62,079 bases of DNA from Guillardia theta CCMP2712 (taxonomy: Eukaryota > Protista > Cryptophyta), in contig NW_005434516.1 in the NCBI RefSeq assembly GCF_000315625.1, positions 23,918 to 85,996 on the forward strand. Direction: 5' to 3'. Positions 845 through 62,079 of the stretch are shown here, one piece after another. A model generated the notes under the pieces. It was not told the origin of the DNA. It made no database searches and saw nothing but the letters and a program-made list of their open reading frames with translations. The translations under genes and the position numbers were made by a program. Each line of letters starts with the position of its first letter. Position 1 is the first letter of the stretch.

Positions 845-1933
845 TTGATAGTTACACGTCATGCCATCAGTTTCTTTTCTTTGCTCACTGACGTTCAAAA
901 AGCGGAGGATGTGTCTCCACCCTACCCCCTCTTTACTTACTCGATCATTATCAACGGGTGGGGTGGGAGCAATCGAAATGGCGGGAGAGATGACGAAGGT
1001 GATATGCATGGGAACGCGATAGAGAAAGACGAAGAAAGAGAAGAAGAAGATGAGCATGAACGTGCTTGTGCATGCGAACATGTGAAGCAAACCTTACCAT
1101 CTCATCCTCATGCAAAGTTTGCAAACTACCGTCGCCAGATTTATCGTGAACTCTTTGCTTGAGAACAAGGACGGTCGGGAGGTCAGAAGCATTGCGCGAT
1201 GGAGGCATGGGATCGGAGGAGGCAGTCTCGCCGATGACGTGCTCCTCGACATCATGGACGGGCTTATCTTCTACTTGCAGTTGCAGCACGTCGACCCCAA
1301 GGCGAGGAGCGGGCGCAGCATGGAAGACGAGAGCTTCTGGATGGAGGTTCTGCGAGTTTACCTGGAGCGAGGGTGGGTATCTGACAAGAACCTGGAGTTG
1401 CGATGGGAGAGCAGGAGGGAGAAGCTTAACCGATCGGTTGTATCCTCCTTCACCCGCCTTACTTCACTACACCTTCACGGCATCTCCGCCAACGACGAGG
1501 TAGTCCATGTTGCAAGCTCCCTGAAATTTCTCGCGCACCTTGAGCTAGTCTGCGATAAGGCAGTGCCGTCCGTCGGTACGTCGGGCACGATGTCGTGCAA
1601 GAGATGTTTACAGCTGACCCACGGAGAAGTGAGCTCGTCGTTTGTGTCGGACACAAGTTTGACATGTCTGTCTTCCACGACCTCGCTTACCCACCTCAGC
1701 CTCCGTAACACCTGCATCACCGACAGCTCTCTCCCTCTCCTCAAGCTCCTGCCTGCCATCCGGACTGTCGACCTGTCAGGCAGTCACGTCACGGACGAGG
1801 GTCTGCGGTGGCTGGGGAGCACGACCTTCTCTGCGTTCAAGAGCTCGCAGTTCACCAACCTGTCACTTTGTGAGACTCTAGCGACGCCTACTGGCATTGA
1901 CACATTAGGTGAAAGCTGATGTTTCGCTTCTCA

Positions 1934-8221: not shown

Positions 8222-11235
<3,014 letters not shown>

Positions 11236-11279
11236 CCCCAAAGCAGCAGGCTCAACACCCCAACACCCGGCCAGGCTTT

Positions 11280-25385: not shown

Positions 25386-25697
25386 TCATCTCATCTGGAT
25401 AGTTGCGAACAGGATGCCCTTACTGAAGCTGTTGCTAAACATGTATCCACAGCATTTTGAGCACATAGGATGCTTGTTCCTTTCGCCAACAAGGGTTTTG
25501 ATCTTTTTTGTCTTGTGATTTGCACATTCGATCACGCTCTCCAGGCTCTCAAAGTCGTCGATCCACGAATCGGAGCTCTCGCTTAGGTGAAACTCTGTCA
25601 TGAGGTTGCTGGTGGTGGTGACCGGTGCCGTCAGAGGACAGTGTCCGAAGAACTCCTCGAACGCGTCCTTGCATAGAGGTGTACTGGTTGGTGCCAT
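25386..25697 (-). CDS. Hypothetical protein, CKDAFEEFF family copy A
   Basis: About 150 bp nearly identical to 34416-34567; substitutions are mostly synonymous in this frame. Confidence 0.5.
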   Translation of the reverse strand: MAPTSTPLCKDAFEEFFGHCPLTAPVTTTSNLMTEFHLSESSDSWIDDFESLESVIECANHKTKKIKTLVGERNKHPMCSKCCGYMFSNSFSKGILFATIQMR

Positions 25698-25934: not shown

Positions 25935-26858
25935 TGTTGAAGTTCCCAGTAACCTTCTCTCCACAGACGGTGACACAGTCACAGTAGCAGTGACACCCGA
26001 AGTAGACAGTGATAGCACCGACTGCAAGTTTCTGTAGCAGTGGTAATAGGTATCACGAATGGTGGCCGCGCAGGAATGATATCAGGATACAGAGAACAAA
26101 CGGAGGTGATAAGAGATTGGTATAGATGGTCAAGCTTGTTTACTTCAAGCAATCCAGTCTCACAGAGACCGTACACCTCGTTCTCCTTTCCCTGTCCTGC
26201 CAATGCGTGCGGCCCTTCTTCCTCTTCCTCGGTCCCTAATATAGGGACTGCCTGGTCCTAGGAACTACCACTACCGGTACTCTACGCTTCTTATCTGCGA
26301 TATGATTCTTCGACCGGTCCGAGGCCTGGTTCCGTACCTTGAGGGTCCCCTGAGAAAGAGTCATAGGCTTGACATGACGAGGTCTTCGATTCTCATCCAA
26401 TGCTCTCTGTGAAGTTGATGTAGCTGCTCCCTTGACCTTGACAGGTCCTGTGTCTCCGTAGGAGCATGCTTGGAGGTGGTCTCGTGCATTCCTTGTATGT
26501 CCTCCGCTAAGATGATCATGATAGTACTGTCTTCTTTGATCAGACCCCTTGTTTTCCCATGTCCATGACTTCAGGGGTGATGCTTCCAATCTCCCCTTGA
26601 GCGTAGCCATATCCTACCACCGTGTCATCTGCTGTCCTGTCGTGGATTGGTATAAGCTGACTCGCTTATCTCCTGCTGCCATCCACGAGTCCTAGGTTCT
26701 TGCTGTCTTCTTCATGATTCTCCTACGTCGTCCTTATTGTAGCTGTTGCTGTCCTCTCCAGGGATGCATTCCGAGGCTCTAAGCATCTGTGCACTTGAGC
26801 CACGTCGATTACTTGGCATTGTCTGAGGTGAAGCTTCCTCCTATCAGGTGCTTCAACA
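25935..26858 (-). repeat. 3' LTR, 924 bp
   Basis: Bounded by 8-bp inverted termini, the TSD and the PPT. Confidence 0.9.
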
Positions 26859-28060
26859 CCCTCCCTTGGCTCTTGTGTGCCGATGCCAGCATTGTTACTT
26901 TGCCGCGCCTCCATTGACGGTGTCAGGCTTGTCAAATTTGACTATGCCTTTCAAATGACCTGCTGCGGTTGACTCTTCGCGCGTCGTCGCCGCAGTATTC
27001 CCTCCCTTGCCTAGAGTAGGCGGGAGCTGTTGCTTGACAGCAAGGTGGACTCATGCTTGGTCTCTGGTCGTCTGCCTTGAACTGAGCTGTATGGTCTTGC
27101 TCATCAGACTTGATATTCCTCTTTCCATAAGCGATCAGCCTCTTGACTTGACTTTCGCAGTAGGGCTGTGCATGGTACTGAAAGGTTCTCCTCAGCGCCC
27201 ATCAGCACTGATGTGCCTGGCGACTTGGGACCTCCTTCATTTCTGCAGCATCATTTCATAACTTCGATCGAAGGTATGTCTTCATCGTCTGCTTCTTCGT
27301 CTTGCGAAGGCTTGGCGCTTCAAGCTGCCTTTCATTTCTTCAACTCTGCTGTAGAGTTGGTTCGTGTCATCATATCGCCATCGTGAGATCGTGGCATGCA
27401 ATGAGGCTTTGGGACGTCTCCCTTCCTCGGTCTTCACAACCTTCAAGCTTTCATCTGCCGTGCTCTGCTTGCCGTATCAACATCACGGCGCTTGACCAGT
27501 GGAATCATGAGGTAATTCCTCTCCTCACTGTTGGCCACGTACAGGCTTTGAGGTTGGATTGAAAACAGCTCTTGTCACTTTTGACATTCAGAGCGACTTT
27601 GATCAGGACTGATCCCTCCATCATCGAGATTTTCTCGCTGTCATGTCACCCCTCAGCTTCTTTGCCACACTCATCATCATGGTGGGAGAGCTATCTGGTG
27701 GCCTCGTCGTCATCTTGTGCGACTCCTGGCTCTGCTTGGGGGATCCCTGTGACTCGTCCATGTCACTTGACATAGGAATGATGCGAGGCTCGATGCTGAT
27801 GTCATCATCAGATGTTCTCAGAGGTTCAGCCTGTCATGAAGTTCAGTATTCAGGTATGATAGTGAAAAGATATGATATTCCCTGATTTTGATTGTTCATT
27901 TAGTGAACCCTCCCTGACTGTCTCTGGTGTCGAACAGATGACCTCAGGCTGAAGTAGGTCCCCTGTGACTTCGCATCATCCATCTCCCTCCCTGACGAGG
28001 TACAGGGAGCTTGGCTAGCTTGACAAGGTCTTGCATGAAGCAGCGGCGGCGTAATGATGG

Positions 28061-31000
28061 TCAAACGGAGACCTGAGACATGTCGTTGCCGAACAAGAAC
28101 GATGCTAGCTGACGAATTTTGGAGACTGGGCAGATCTTGGTGAGAATGTCCGCAGGGTTGTATGTAGTAGCAATCTTCACAGCGATGATTTCGTTTTCAT
28201 CCACCATCTGAAGAGTGAACCGATGTCGAATTGCAATATGCTTAAGCTTCGAAAATGCGCGACGGTCCCTCAGCAGATGGATGACCGCTGCATTATCAAC
28301 GAGAATGATTGTTGGGTCACGCTGTACAAACCCCAGTTCAAGCAGGATGGATCGCAGCGTCCGTATCGCCTTCGCACAGTTGGAGCAACTGTACAGCTCG
28401 GCTTCCGTACTCGATAAGCTGACGACCTTCTGCAATTTGCTGGAGAAGTTAACTGGACCTCCGTTAAAAGAAATCACAATCCCTCCTTGAGAACGACGTG
28501 TAATTGGATCTGTTCCCCAGGTGGAATCACTCGCAGCTATCAGAGTGTTGTGATAATGCTGTTGATTGAAGAATGTACCCGATTGGGAGAACGTTAAGCT
28601 CTGTTCACGAGTGTTATAAACGTATTGAGTCAGATGGATTACGGCTTTGGAACTACAACTGGAGAAGGGAGTTGGATCAGAATTGTTCAGCNNNNNNNNN
28701 NNNNNNNNNNNNNNNNNNNNNNNNNNNNNNNNNNNNNNNNNNNNNNNNNNNNNNNNNNNNNNNNNNNNNNNNNNNNNNNNNNNNNNNNNNNCTAGCAGAG
28801 CTTGGTACAGTCGAATTTGCTTCTCATTCAACACCAGATCATCCTCTAGGTGGTAGGAGGAGACATAATCTTGTGGTAAGACGCTTCGCACTGACTTTTG
28901 AGGTATTTCGAATCGCTCAACAATCTGATGGATAAAATGTGTCTGGTTGAGCTCGACAGTGCCTTTAGCCAAGTCTTGTGTTATTTTGACTCCCAGGAAT
29001 GTTCCAGTCGCCTGAGGGGACTCGGAAAATTCAAAATGGTCAGAGAGTTTGAGCAGAAATTCAGACAAGATTGCTTCTGACTGAGAAGCCAGCAAAATAT
29101 CGTCAACGAAGATGGTCCCAATGATTCGATGACCACTGGCATTCTCGTAGACAAAAAGTACCTCGTCGACGCCGACTAGACGACATCCCATCTTCTTCAG
29201 AGTCTTCGTGAAACATTTGAACCAACTCCGCGGGCTGGTTGACAGGCCATACAGGCTTTTCTTCAGACGAAGTAGTCTTCCCCTTGGTAAGGCGAGCTGT
29301 TCTGGAGGTAACATGTAAATTTCCTCGTCGATATCTGCATTCAAAAACGCGGTCGAAATATCTCGCATCGTCAACAACCAGGCGTTTCCAGCGGCAATTG
29401 CACAAATGAGCCTAACGTTCTGGAAATCTGACGTTGGAGCATATACTGGACCATCAGTGGGAACTAGATTGCCCAGGATGACCAACCTCGCCTTAAATTT
29501 CGCAATCTCACCTTCAGTATTGTATTTCAAAGTATACACCCATTGGAATGGAGCGATCTTCGCCTTTCGGTTGCTGGGATAATCCACGTCTTCCCACACT
29601 CCCTTTTCCTTCATACTGTTGAGTTCTTTAAGCTCAGCTTGCAACCATTGGTGTCTTTCTGCGCTCAGCAACATTTGCTTTCTGGTCTTCGGAGCTTGGA
29701 TTCTACCGGTAGTGTCGATCCTGCTGCTGGCCGAATTGTCTGCCGCACTTGTCTGCAATAATTGAACTGTATTTCCCTGAGCTTCTGAGACATCCATGAA
29801 TTTACACATGTAGGCTGTCAGCATTTTGCTGTGAGACGCTTGCTCCGGCCCGACGTTCGTCTGGTTACTGTCGTCCTCGGCAGGCTGAGATATTCCCCTT
29901 GCACAGAAAGAATAGGCCGTTTCTGCCGTCCGGGATTGATTAAACATTCCTGTCAAGGTCGATTGGCTTCCTGACCGTCTAGAACGAATCATTGTGACCA
30001 GATTCACGCGTTCAGAAGTCAGACGTAGTTTCGGGTCCGTTGTAGGAACAATAATCCAATCATTGTCTGAATCGTCATATTTGATTTTCAAGTAAAATGC
30101 CCCGTTTCTGAACACAATCTGCGTTATCGTCGCCGCCCTTGTTCCATATGTTACTTTGCGGTTGACATACTGCCGTTCCATTAAGGTTCGATCCGATCGA
30201 AAATCGCTTCTTGTACGTTTTCTGCCGACTTCGCCGTCCTCGCTTCCCAGCACAGATTCCCCAGCAGTTATCGATTGCTTCTGATCTGCGGACGGTTCAG
30301 GTTGCCAGTCTGCATCGTGTCCATCGTCTTCACTGGACTCTGCCATACTGCCATCCGAGGCTTCCGAGCTGGTTGCTCCATGATCATTCTGAGTTGAGCA
30401 ATGTTCATCCTCCTCGCGCAGTCCACCATACTCCTGTCCTGGGGGTAGATGCAGTCTACTGGTCCTTCTGAAATGAAAGAAGGTCTCATCAAATCTTGCT
30501 TGTCGCGTATGTATCACCTTGTTGGTAGCTGGATTGAATACCAAGTACCCTGGCTGGTAACCCATGTGAGCCTCTGAATTTCCCAGGTTAACAGCAGTAA
30601 TAGCAGGCATATCATTCTTCAATTTCTCCTCGTTGGCAACAAATACCGTACATCCGAATACCTTCAGTTTATCATAGTCGAATTCTCGTCCCTGATAAAG
30701 TTGCCATGGAGAGAGGCCGTCCCGATTCGTCAGGTTGGGTAAACTGTTGAAGATCAGCGTTGCTTGTTGGACGGAGAAGTGCCAGAAGCGCTGCGGGACT
30801 TGTGCTTGGTACGAGATTGCTCGATGGATGGTAGTCACTGTTCGGATCGCCCTCTCTGCTCGACCGTTGGCAGCACTTGTGTAGTCCGGGGTAAAATTCC
30901 AGATAATCCCCTTCATCTTCACGAATGATTGCAACTGTAGGTTTGCGAACTCTGAGCCATTGTCGCTGACTACTGTTATGACTGCTGGTCGGCCTGAACG

Positions 31001-32452
31001 TTCTTCCTGCAAGATCAAACTCTGCATGACTTCCTTAGTTTCGCCTTTTGACGTTAACGGAATCGTAATAATAAATCCACTGTAGGCATCGACGACGACT
31101 AAGAAGTAACGAAATCTTCCTGGCTCCGATACTGTCCCCATGTCTTTCAAATCCACATTCCACTGGCTATTAATCCTTTCGGCTCTGTCTTGTCGGTAAC
31201 CGCCTTGGGTTTTGATAGGTAGCTTTGAGAATTTGCTGGTTTGACAAACGTGACAAGGAGCTGCTGTGCGATGGGTTGAACTGCATGTCACTTTGTTGTT
31301 TCCTTTTGCCAACATCCTTTGAACTCTGCCTGACGTATGCCCAAGTCTCCAGTGCCACAGAATGGTTGGAATTGGGTTGAATGGGGAGGCTGGAATGTCC
31401 TTGCTGCTCAAGGATTTCAGTGATATCTTGTCTTCTTCAGCAGTGGAGGGCTCTGCTGCACACTTTGTCAGTAGGGCCGCTGCCTCAGTATTACGGCTGC
31501 TTGACTGTGCTGCGATGACAAGTGAGTGTCGAGACTTATCAACTGCTGCTTTAAGCACATAGATTCCCTCCCAAAGGTGTACAGGTAACAGTAAGTTATC
31601 TGGCATACGAACCCAAGATCCAGTTGACTTCCCTGACAGTTCCACAGTTGTCTCTTCTCCAAGAAATTGACTCATTGAAAAGATGGTGAGCGGAGTCTCC
31701 GCACAGACCATTGCTGTGATTACGAATGTGTGTGCGATAGTAACATTTCCATTGCTTGTAATTGCACATTGCACTCTCATTTCTCCTTCTTCCTCGCACG
31801 TGAATGTCTCCCCGCTGGCTGTGCTGACAACAGTGGCTTGTAGACTTTTACGCACATTCGTCAATAGAGATCTGTCACCGCAGAGACTGATATTAGCTCC
31901 GGTATCGAGTAGCATATGGTGACAACCCGGTAAGTGTACGTTCAGGAACGCCTTAGCTCTGAGCAATTTTTCGATATCAAGGCAGACGTGCACCCTGCGC
32001 ATAACTCGTCGTACATGAATGTCACCTGATTGAAATGGATTATCTGTATCTGAGGCTTCCTGACAAGAATCCACTTCTTCTCGTTCGCCAAGCCTCTGGC
32101 TCACATTTCTTGTTCTCCTATCCGAGGTTGCTGGTGCCTGACCTATCAAGGCCACATCGTCCACTGCCGATCGACCATCTGTCAGGTACAGGACCCTCCT
32201 CTCATTTGCTTGAGGAGCGGCTTGTCTCCGCGACACTGATACTTCTGTCCGGCTGGAATGATCAGGAGCAAGTCTCTCCATCAGTCGGTCTGTCAAAATA
32301 TCGAGTTTTTCCTCCAGCAATGCAACACGACTGTTGTCATACATACGAGTCCCGGGATCGTGCCTCATGCCCCTAGTCGCATGTCCAGGCCCGTGTCCCC
32401 TCTGTCTTGTCGTGGATTGGTATAAGCTGACTCGCTTATCTCCTGCTGCCAT
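28061..32452 (-). CDS. pol: Copia Pol polyprotein (protease, GAG-pre-integrase, integrase, Tudor-like segment, RT, RNase H); spans an N gap
   Basis: LLDTGA; LWHWRLGH…CHVC; VDL/SDNGSEF/NGRAER; KFKARLV, DISTAFL, LKKSLYGL, FVDD; SDSTWG, SSTEAE, DNAA, KHI, NPADILTK. Confidence 0.95.
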   Translation of the reverse strand: MAAGDKRVSLYQSTTRQRGHGPGHATRGMRHDPGTRMYDNSRVALLEEKLDILTDRLMERLAPDHSSRTEVSVSRRQAAPQANERRVLYLTDGRSAVDDVALIGQAPATSDRRTRNVSQRLGEREEVDSCQEASDTDNPFQSGDIHVRRVMRRVHVCLDIEKLLRAKAFLNVHLPGCHHMLLDTGANISLCGDRSLLTNVRKSLQATVVSTASGETFTCEEEGEMRVQCAITSNGNVTIAHTFVITAMVCAETPLTIFSMSQFLGEETTVELSGKSTGSWVRMPDNLLLPVHLWEGIYVLKAAVDKSRHSLVIAAQSSSRNTEAAALLTKCAAEPSTAEEDKISLKSLSSKDIPASPFNPIPTILWHWRLGHTSGRVQRMLAKGNNKVTCSSTHRTAAPCHVCQTSKFSKLPIKTQGGYRQDRAERINSQWNVDLKDMGTVSEPGRFRYFLVVVDAYSGFIITIPLTSKGETKEVMQSLILQEERSGRPAVITVVSDNGSEFANLQLQSFVKMKGIIWNFTPDYTSAANGRAERAIRTVTTIHRAISYQAQVPQRFWHFSVQQATLIFNSLPNLTNRDGLSPWQLYQGREFDYDKLKVFGCTVFVANEEKLKNDMPAITAVNLGNSEAHMGYQPGYLVFNPATNKVIHTRQARFDETFFHFRRTSRLHLPPGQEYGGLREEDEHCSTQNDHGATSSEASDGSMAESSEDDGHDADWQPEPSADQKQSITAGESVLGSEDGEVGRKRTRSDFRSDRTLMERQYVNRKVTYGTRAATITQIVFRNGAFYLKIKYDDSDNDWIIVPTTDPKLRLTSERVNLVTMIRSRRSGSQSTLTGMFNQSRTAETAYSFCARGISQPAEDDSNQTNVGPEQASHSKMLTAYMCKFMDVSEAQGNTVQLLQTSAADNSASSRIDTTGRIQAPKTRKQMLLSAERHQWLQAELKELNSMKEKGVWEDVDYPSNRKAKIAPFQWVYTLKYNTEGEIAKFKARLVILGNLVPTDGPVYAPTSDFQNVRLICAIAAGNAWLLTMRDISTAFLNADIDEEIYMLPPEQLALPRGRLLRLKKSLYGLSTSPRSWFKCFTKTLKKMGCRLVGVDEVLFVYENASGHRIIGTIFVDDILLASQSEAILSEFLLKLSDHFEFSESPQATGTFLGVKITQDLAKGTVELNQTHFIHQIVERFEIPQKSVRSVLPQDYVSSYHLEDDLVLNEKQIRLYQALLXXXXXXXXXXXXXXXXXXXXXXXXXXXXXXXXXXLNNSDPTPFSSCSSKAVIHLTQYVYNTREQSLTFSQSGTFFNQQHYHNTLIAASDSTWGTDPITRRSQGGIVISFNGGPVNFSSKLQKVVSLSSTEAELYSCSNCAKAIRTLRSILLELGFVQRDPTIILVDNAAVIHLLRDRRAFSKLKHIAIRHRFTLQMVDENEIIAVKIATTYNPADILTKICPVSKIRQLASFLFGNDMSQVSV
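28692..28791. other. Assembly gap (100 N) within the RT/RNase H connection
   Basis: N run. Confidence 1.
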
Positions 32453-32628
32453 CCACGAGTCCTAGGTTCTTGCTGTCTTCTTCATGATTCTCCTACGTCG
32501 TCCTTATTGTAGCTGTTGCTGTCCTCTCCAGGGATGCATTCCGAGGCTCTAAGCATCTGTGCACTTGAGCCACGTCGATTACTTGGCATTGTCTGAGGTG
32601 AAGCTTCCTCCTATCAGGTGCTTCAACA
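32408..32628 (-). repeat. Truncated 5' LTR (221 bp, identical to 26638-26858)
   Basis: Base-by-base identity at offset 5770. Confidence 0.92.
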
Positions 32629-34290: not shown

Positions 34291-34593
34291 TCACCCTTTG
34301 ACGTATGAAGGTTGGGGCTGGCACCCTGTGTTCCTTGACCTGACACTCCTGCTTCTTCCAATCGAAGCACCATCCGAGAATTGAGCCCTCGTATACTTCT
34401 TTTCGTTCATGAACTCAATCACGCTCTCCAGGCTCTCAAAGTCGTCGATCCACGAATCGGAGCTATCGCTTAGGTGAAACTCCGTCATGAGGTTGCTGGT
34501 GGTGGTGACCGGTGCCGTCAGAGGACAGTGTCCGAAGAACTCCTCGAACGCGTCCTTGCATAGAGGCGAGGTCGAGGACTGCATGGCACGCAT
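34291..34593 (-). CDS. Hypothetical protein, CKDAFEEFF family copy B
   Basis: Shares PLCKDAFEEFFGHCPLTAPVTTTSNLMTEFHLS.SSDSWIDDFESLESVIE with copy A; different C-terminus. Confidence 0.5.
   Translation of the reverse strand: MRAMQSSTSPLCKDAFEEFFGHCPLTAPVTTTSNLMTEFHLSDSSDSWIDDFESLESVIEFMNEKKYTRAQFSDGASIGRSRSVRSRNTGCQPQPSYVKG

Positions 34594-55235: not shown

Positions 55236-62079
<6,844 letters not shown>

Follow-up and report, generated by a model that had tools for sequence, protein, structure and literature searches.

What does a retrotransposon of a cryptophyte alga keep between its integrase and its reverse transcriptase? The question is raised by a stretch of 62,079 nucleotides from the genome of Guillardia theta CCMP2712 (assembly GCF_000315625.1, contig NW_005434516.1, positions 23,918 to 85,996 of the forward strand), which is referred to as the window and in whose numbering all coordinates are given. 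It contains a copy of a Ty1/copia element, a retrotransposon with long terminal repeats (LTRs), in which a preliminary description of the window had marked a compact segment of ~50 amino acids (aa) at 30025-30175 as Tudor/Agenet-like. Integrase-fused reader domains are the clearest natural cases of programmable integration-site choice, and the known fusions are almost all chromodomains on Ty3/gypsy elements. Here, we describe the segment as part of a larger conserved module, residues 744-824 of the Pol protein, which according to structure prediction would be an independently folding accessory domain with a basic helix packed on a five-stranded barrel of Tudor type. We lean, with some reserve, towards reading the module as a tether in the integrase tail that goes back to a Tudor reader and whose chromatin binding and role in targeting are suggested by its position and ancestry.

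The module is encoded in an open Pol frame of 1463 aa on the minus strand (28061-32452), the strand of all Pol features named below. The frame reads in the order protease, integrase (IN), module, reverse transcriptase (RT) and RNase H, and a gap of 100 Ns (28692-28791) lies within its RT/RNase H part. A Pfam scan of the deduced protein detected Pol_BBD (residues 181-240), gag_pre-integrs (362-407), the integrase catalytic core rve (PF00665; 426-524, 30881-31177, E 3.5e-14), the C-terminal SH3-like domain of integrase, SH3_retrovirus (PF25597; 588-660, 30473-30691, E 5.5e-12), and the reverse transcriptase domain RVT_2 (PF07727; 952-1178, 28919-29599, E 7.5e-41). This domain order, which includes rve and an RVT_2-type RT, identifies the host element as a Ty1/copia LTR retrotransposon. 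The peptide singled out previously, QYVNRKVTYGTRAATITQIVFRNGAFYLKIKYDDSDNDWIIV, is found exactly in this frame at residues 761-802 (30047-30172) and is bracketed by the interval that had been given for it; the plus-strand frame at the same locus is packed with stops. The path that had been proposed, from integrase through an acidic linker to the segment and on to RT, with flanks of low complexity, agrees with the Pfam order and with the sequence: an acidic, Ser-rich linker of low complexity (~661-743, 30224-30472) is located upstream of the module, and a Ser/Arg-rich stretch follows downstream of the segment. A compact segment does exist, but the conserved unit is larger than 42-50 aa. It comprises ~80 aa (744-824, 29981-30223), starts with the basic stretch RKRTRSDF at residue 744 and ends near residue 824. 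The module is placed 84 aa past the IN SH3 domain and 128 aa ahead of the Pfam RT match, from which it is separated by a second, likewise poorly conserved linker (825-951, 29600-29980).

Conservation of the module was assessed within the genome by a six-frame search with Pol residues 721-851 against the 87.1-Mb assembly of 669 contigs. This search returned four near-identical copies of the lineage present in the window (lineage A) and two further copia lineages, B and C, which match the window module at 34-38% identity across the same 70-90 residues. A profile search of the genome confirmed all three lineages. In each of their full-length frames (3/3), the module follows rve and SH3_retrovirus and precedes RVT_2. 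When the Pol proteins of A, B and C were aligned, the module reached an identity score of 0.24-0.36 and was almost gapless, as compared to 0.07-0.23 for the two linkers and 0.45-0.64 for the integrase and RT cores. The ratio of non-synonymous to synonymous substitution rates (dN/dS), determined between the window copy and the environmental relative P0001 (locus L051), was 0.21 in the module, 0.58 in the first linker, 0.34 in the second linker and 0.03-0.06 in the enzymatic domains. The preliminary description had made its proposal depend on conservation of the segment above the surrounding linkers, and this is what both measures revealed; the module is kept under purifying selection. The segment is more than a product of chance, because it recurs at ~35% identity in two other copia lineages and coincides with a local conservation peak. 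Invariant in the module alignment are the residues T-R-x-D-F, R, E, N-R, Q-x-V-F, F, D and W. The module was acquired before the lineages A, B and C split.

Of note, in the comparison with L051 the third codon positions are 0.88-0.95 identical over residues 692-854 of Pol (29890-30378) and 0.60-0.82 identical over the rest, and the synonymous rate (dS) is 0.15-0.19 in this tract and 0.45-0.66 elsewhere. The low-dS tract, which covers linker and module, could represent a recombination tract or reflect constraint at the nucleotide level.

A profile search with the module against 1.84 billion representative proteins yielded eight hits. One of them, P0011, is a repetitive artefact and was discarded, and the remaining seven are fragments, either of copia-type Pol or short and unannotated, that align to the module. 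Six hits are related to lineages A, B or C. The short fragments P0012 and P0013 represent a fourth lineage, D, from outside this genome, with 38% identity to C. In both hits that also have an RVT_2 match (P0008, P0002), the module is located upstream of it. No cellular protein was among the hits of this search, which thus pointed to no Tudor donor gene. A word-based homologue search with the module region yielded close relatives only, three proteins with 82-91% identity, and the same three were returned when named or Chromo-bearing copia relatives were sought with the integrase region at a strict threshold (E 1e-10). A second conserved region of ~100 aa is present downstream of the module in lineages B, C and D (L053:5207-6124, minus strand; L052:5208-6269, minus strand; P0012) and is absent from lineage A. 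AlphaFold2 (AF2) modelled this region as a helix and ~4 strands with low confidence, the predicted local distance difference test (pLDDT) being 35-51.

The fold of the module itself was predicted by AF2 from an alignment of eight rows with lineage A as target, and in a separate run with lineage C. For lineage A, residues 748-812 were modelled with a pLDDT of ~90 as an α-helix (748-762, 30167-30211; model residues 11-25, pLDDT 87-91) and five strands (766-769, 772-782, 785-792, 799-803 and 809-811), which together make up a predicted SH3/Tudor-like barrel (766-811, 30020-30157). The helix coincides with invariant columns of the alignment and contains the near-invariant motif T-R-x-D-F-x3-R-x3-E. 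With lineage C as target, the same helix and five strands were obtained at a pLDDT of 76-88. Structural neighbours were determined by comparison with 48,161 representative chains using VIA-align. The best match was TbTudor (6if4; Z 6.3, 53 aa, 2.4 Å, 24% identity), and near-equal matches were R67 DHFR, MRG15, the PHF20L1 Tudor, RBBP1, CarD and the RDM15 Tudor (7de9; Z 6.0, 51 aa, 2.1 Å). A Foldseek search with the AF2 model gave no match at E ≤ 1e-3; its top rows, which lie above this value, are CarD/Mfd-RID, MRG chromo-barrels, TbTudor, the UHRF1 tandem Tudor, 53BP1, SETDB1 and PWWP. VIA comparison over Foldseek's list adds SETDB1, Spindlin and PHF20, and Z values of 6.0-6.4 to Tudor and chromo-barrel chains extend over 50-59 aa. 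The UHRF1 tandem Tudor is also among the best VIA matches, and MBT barrels likewise match at Z ~6. Since Z stays below 8, these values settle the fold class, i.e. an SH3-like small barrel with mostly Royal-family neighbours, but not the family. In the model, the module shows the five-stranded SH3-like barrel of the Tudor/Royal superfamily, and the Tudor/SH3-like fold on which the earlier proposal had been staked is indeed predicted, both by the pLDDT and by the Tudor and chromo-barrel neighbours.

The family was addressed by comparing profiles. The genome encodes 13 matches to PF21743 (PTM/DIR17-like Tudor), nine of which were aligned to obtain a host Tudor profile (A3). Using hhalign, the module profile (A1) was matched to this host Tudor with a probability of 84% (P 7.4e-6, score 30.3, 47 columns). 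Column shuffles of the module alignment (n = 200) reached a mean score of 9.5 (sd 2.0, maximum 15.8), and a score of 15.3 was obtained with the alignment reversed. Controls were provided by other small barrels of this genome. Here, the module scored 8.3 with the element's own SH3_retrovirus domain (probability 0.1%), 8.4 with SH3_Tf2-1 of gypsy elements, 11.7 with the Chromo domain of gypsy elements (0.4%) and 13.8 with three host domains of the Agenet type (1.1%). As a yardstick for two families of the Tudor group, host Tudor and host Agenet were compared and scored 25.2. The hhalign alignment reproduces the register proposed earlier, pairing YVNRKV with xIGxxV and Y-x-I-x-Y-D-D with Y-x-I-x-F-E-D-G-D. 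Of the double label Tudor/Agenet, only the first half can be retained: Agenet membership was rejected on the score and probability given above and on the lack of a match to Pfam PF05641. Membership in the chromodomain family was rejected as well, given the hhalign probability of 0.4%, the lack of a PF00385 hit and a topology of five strands with an N-terminal helix versus three strands with a C-terminal helix. The idea of a duplicated integrase SH3 domain was likewise discarded at a score of only 8.3. When the host Tudor profile was searched against the PDB, the best match was the RDM15 Tudor (E 1.7e-8), followed by KDM4A, PHF1 and 53BP1, and therefore we read the module as belonging, though divergent, to the Tudor branch of the Royal superfamily. 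A language-model atlas provided sub-threshold leads to PTM_DIR17_Tudor, Spin-Ssty and Tudor_5/Agenet clusters. As part of the reading that we favour, the barrel would be homologous to, though divergent from, the Tudor class of eukaryotic histone readers represented by PTM/DIR17 and RDM15.

How might such a module work? In the scenario that we favour, a narrow Ty1/copia clade would have acquired a Tudor-type barrel before its three lineages in this genome diverged. Following processing of Pol, the domain would stay attached to integrase and dock the integration complex onto a chromatin feature, and docking would bias the landing sites of new copies, as chromodomains do for chromoviruses. The conserved basic helix may add contacts to DNA or the nucleosome, or may contribute to nuclear import.

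Several results weigh against a Tudor-derived reader. When the module alone, the wider linker and each of the eight alignment members were scanned with Pfam, no Tudor, Agenet or Chromo match was detected even at E 10; all hits were at chance level, e.g. PB1 at E 0.07. A profile search of PDB sequences with the module found no Tudor and only uS11m (E 0.04), which we take as a chance match. The alignments are shallow (5-9 sequences), and the confidence of hhalign and AF2 rests on this little diversity. In the structural comparison, Tudor, chromo-barrel, KOW, CarD and R67 DHFR are tied at Z ~6. Finally, two of the canonical positions of the aromatic cage lack an aromatic residue. We considered a cage to consist of 3-4 aromatic residues, provided by the end of strand 1, the start of strand 2, strand 3 and strand 4, plus an acidic residue. 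In the hhalign register, the F/W that ends strand 1 in the host Tudor is V/M in B and C, and falls into a gap in the window copy; Y769 adjoins this deletion in the window lineage. The W-Y that starts strand 2 in the host Tudor is V-E or V-R in B and C, and T-R in the window copy. The Tyr in strand 4 is present in B, C and D, and is an Asp in the window lineage.

Only two cage positions are kept in all lineages, namely the aromatic residue in strand 3 (Y792; F in the others) and the Asp D796. As far as the aligned residues tell, the canonical methyl-lysine cage is incomplete, and with two of its aromatics lost, the ligand may not be classical trimethyl-lysine. The pattern F-[DE]-D-x-Y-W is retained in lineages C and D, and B retains Y-W after a longer loop; the motif of 53BP1 is F-D-D-G-Y. 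The invariant aromatic residues F781, F786 and W799 might be core residues or might form an alternative pocket. Given the degenerate cage and the basic helix, alternative ligands would be DNA, the nucleosome surface or a host protein.

These observations also bear on the other explanations. The barrel could possess the Tudor/SH3 fold without reading chromatin and bind nucleic acid or a partner protein instead, like the bacterial CarD/Mfd-RID domains, KOW or the C-terminal domain of retroviral integrases; conceivable partners would be the element's own cDNA or RNA as well as constituents of the particle or of the nuclear import machinery. Such a role would be in line with the equal structural Z values of CarD, KOW, R67 DHFR and Tudor, with the incomplete cage and with the location of the most invariant residues in the basic helix R-T-R-x-D-F-x3-R, which resembles a nuclear localization signal (NLS) or a nucleic acid-binding element. 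However, the profile similarity is specific for the host Tudor of the histone-reader type and is absent for the other small barrels tested, the strand-3 aromatic residue and the Asp are present in all lineages, C and D even have the 53BP1-like F-[DE]-D-x-Y, and the position of the module mirrors that of the reader domains in other elements. We therefore regard a barrel without reader function as rather unlikely, although it deserves serious consideration. Much less probable is that the Tudor resemblance arose by chance in a merely better-conserved linker or in a duplicate of the integrase SH3-like domain. The missing Pfam hits and the shallow alignments would be compatible with this view, but the high AF2 confidence in two lineages, an hhalign score ~10 sd above the column shuffles, the score of 8.3 (probability 0.1%) with the element's own SH3_retrovirus domain and purifying selection on the module leave it with very little credit.

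A different matter is whether the module travels with integrase at all. It could also form an N-terminal extension of the mature RT/RNase H, or be released as a peptide, and act in reverse transcription or particle assembly. The distances of 84 aa from the IN SH3 domain and 128 aa to the Pfam RT match would allow for this, as would the preceding linker, which is as poorly conserved as the following one. In Ty1, cleavage between IN and RT occurs some tens of residues ahead of a conserved W-x-x-A-x-x-x-E helix, which precedes RT. This helix is found at residues ~925-950 of the window Pol, and by analogy with Ty1 cleavage would thus fall downstream of the module. Moreover, Ty1 and Ty5 as a rule have long integrase tails that carry NLS and targeting determinants. 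Both points speak for the integrase side and make a role on the RT side improbable; solely by this analogy to Ty1, the module would belong to the mature integrase. Taken together, the integrase-tail tether derived from a Tudor reader is the reading that we retain. A more specific version holds that a cryptophyte-restricted Ty1/copia clade independently captured a histone-reader Tudor, remodelled it by degeneration of the cage and addition of the basic helix, and uses it as an integrase tether for a chromatin feature other than the classical trimethyl-lysine marks, and this is put forward tentatively, as a possibility.

The copy of the element in the window extends from 25935 to 32628 on the minus strand, as delimited by blastn against a longer copy on another contig (L054, with an 1825-aa frame) and against the window itself and by repeat search. 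Positions 28792-32407 are 99.2% identical to L054 (blastn), and the internal region and the 3' side are collinear with it. The 5' end consists of an LTR-derived piece of 239 nt (32391-32628), which repeats 26620-26858, the junction being at ~32407; the first ATG of the 1463-aa frame is located inside this piece. The window copy is 5'-deleted and hence defective at this end. The copia copy lies between the two units of a 152-nt direct repeat (25528-25679 and 34415-34566), which are 98% identical and 8.9 kb apart; the repeat might be left over from an outer element or stem from a local duplication. Host-type genes are found near the element, namely genes for a TPR-repeat protein (9610-11241, minus strand) and an LRR protein (1110-1919, plus strand), and the surroundings are not an obvious region of transposable elements (TEs) only. 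Further away, a GC-rich stretch (~60%) contains an uninterrupted open reading frame of 1528 aa (55834-60420, plus strand), for which no Pfam family was detected at E ≤ 0.001.

If the favoured reading is true, different retroelement families would converge on the Royal superfamily. The element would then also provide a compact domain whose half-cage is unusual, and the ligand of this domain could define a chromatin state in an algal lineage that has received little study. Should the tentative version of capture and remodelling be correct, it would add a third, independent way in which readers guide the targeting of LTR retrotransposons, and the first Tudor-based one in Ty1/copia. Such domains can escape Pfam by divergence, and surveys of TE-reader fusions that rely on domain models would miss them. 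Capture of reader domains by TEs in general has been published (bioRxiv 10.1101/2021.11.30.470311), and capture of chromodomains is on record for chromoviruses, the Chronos elements of oomycetes and the diatom copia elements CoDi-A and CoDi-I (PMC2774666, PMC5348765). We found no report in the literature of a Tudor-type domain in a copia element.

The classical case is that of the chromoviruses such as MAGGY and Tf1, in which the integrase of a Ty3/gypsy element is followed by a chromodomain (Gao et al. 2008, as cited in PMC5348765). They share with the window element a small barrel of the Royal superfamily appended after the SH3-like domain of integrase, and the presumed tethering of integration. 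In contrast, the window element is Ty1/copia, its domain lies inside Pol, with IN before it and RT after it, and matches a Tudor profile rather than Chromo, and its cage is incomplete. The same genome also harbors chromoviruses: multi-copy Ty3/gypsy elements (L071-L082, e.g. L075:1-1731, plus strand) have Integrase_H2C2, rve, SH3_Tf2-1 and, at the C-terminus of Pol, Chromo, for which at least 73 matches were counted. The equivalent position of the chromodomain to which the preliminary description had drawn attention is thus seen in the gypsy elements of this very genome, in the order IN, SH3, Chromo.

Closest in architecture are CoDi-A and CoDi-I of Phaeodactylum tricornutum, which are likewise Ty1/copia, carry a reader-type module at the C-terminus of integrase and were proposed to have captured it independently. 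However, CoDi-A was described as chromodomain-HMM-like (PMC2774666), whereas the window module has no Chromo signal, a distinction drawn from the description. The two are probably not the same module, because the search of 1.84 billion proteins gave no hits of more distant similarity. A Tudor domain at the C-terminus has been found in Gypsy-10_Ec32 of the brown alga Ectocarpus, which was described in 2025 as the first TE to carry a Tudor and has a homologue in Tribonema (PMC12477816). Again, a Tudor-type reader is fused to the integrase of an LTR retrotransposon in a chlorophyll-c alga, but this element is Ty3/gypsy and from stramenopiles, and standard models would presumably recognise its domain, whereas the module of the window belongs to a copia element from another lineage of algae and has diverged too far for Pfam.

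Among cellular domains, the PTM/DIR17-like Tudor (PF21743) is the best profile-profile match of the module, and the Tudor of Arabidopsis RDM15 (7de9), a reader of H3K4me1, is a top structural neighbour with a Z of 6.0. Both share with the module the pattern [GN]-R-x-V ... G-x-I ... [YF]-x-[IV]-x-[FY]-[DE]-D. They differ from it in that the module has an additional N-terminal basic helix, two extra residues in strand 2/3, replacements of the cage aromatics in strands 1 and 2 and a score below the Pfam threshold.

Within Ty1/copia itself, targeting determinants in a long C-terminal tail of integrase are known from Ty5 and Ty1, in which the targeting domain of Ty5 binds Sir4 and a C-terminal motif of the Ty1 integrase binds AC40. 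The window element would follow this layout, but in Ty5 and Ty1 short linear motifs serve as determinants and contact specific host proteins, whereas the module described here is predicted to be a folded domain of ~60-80 aa.

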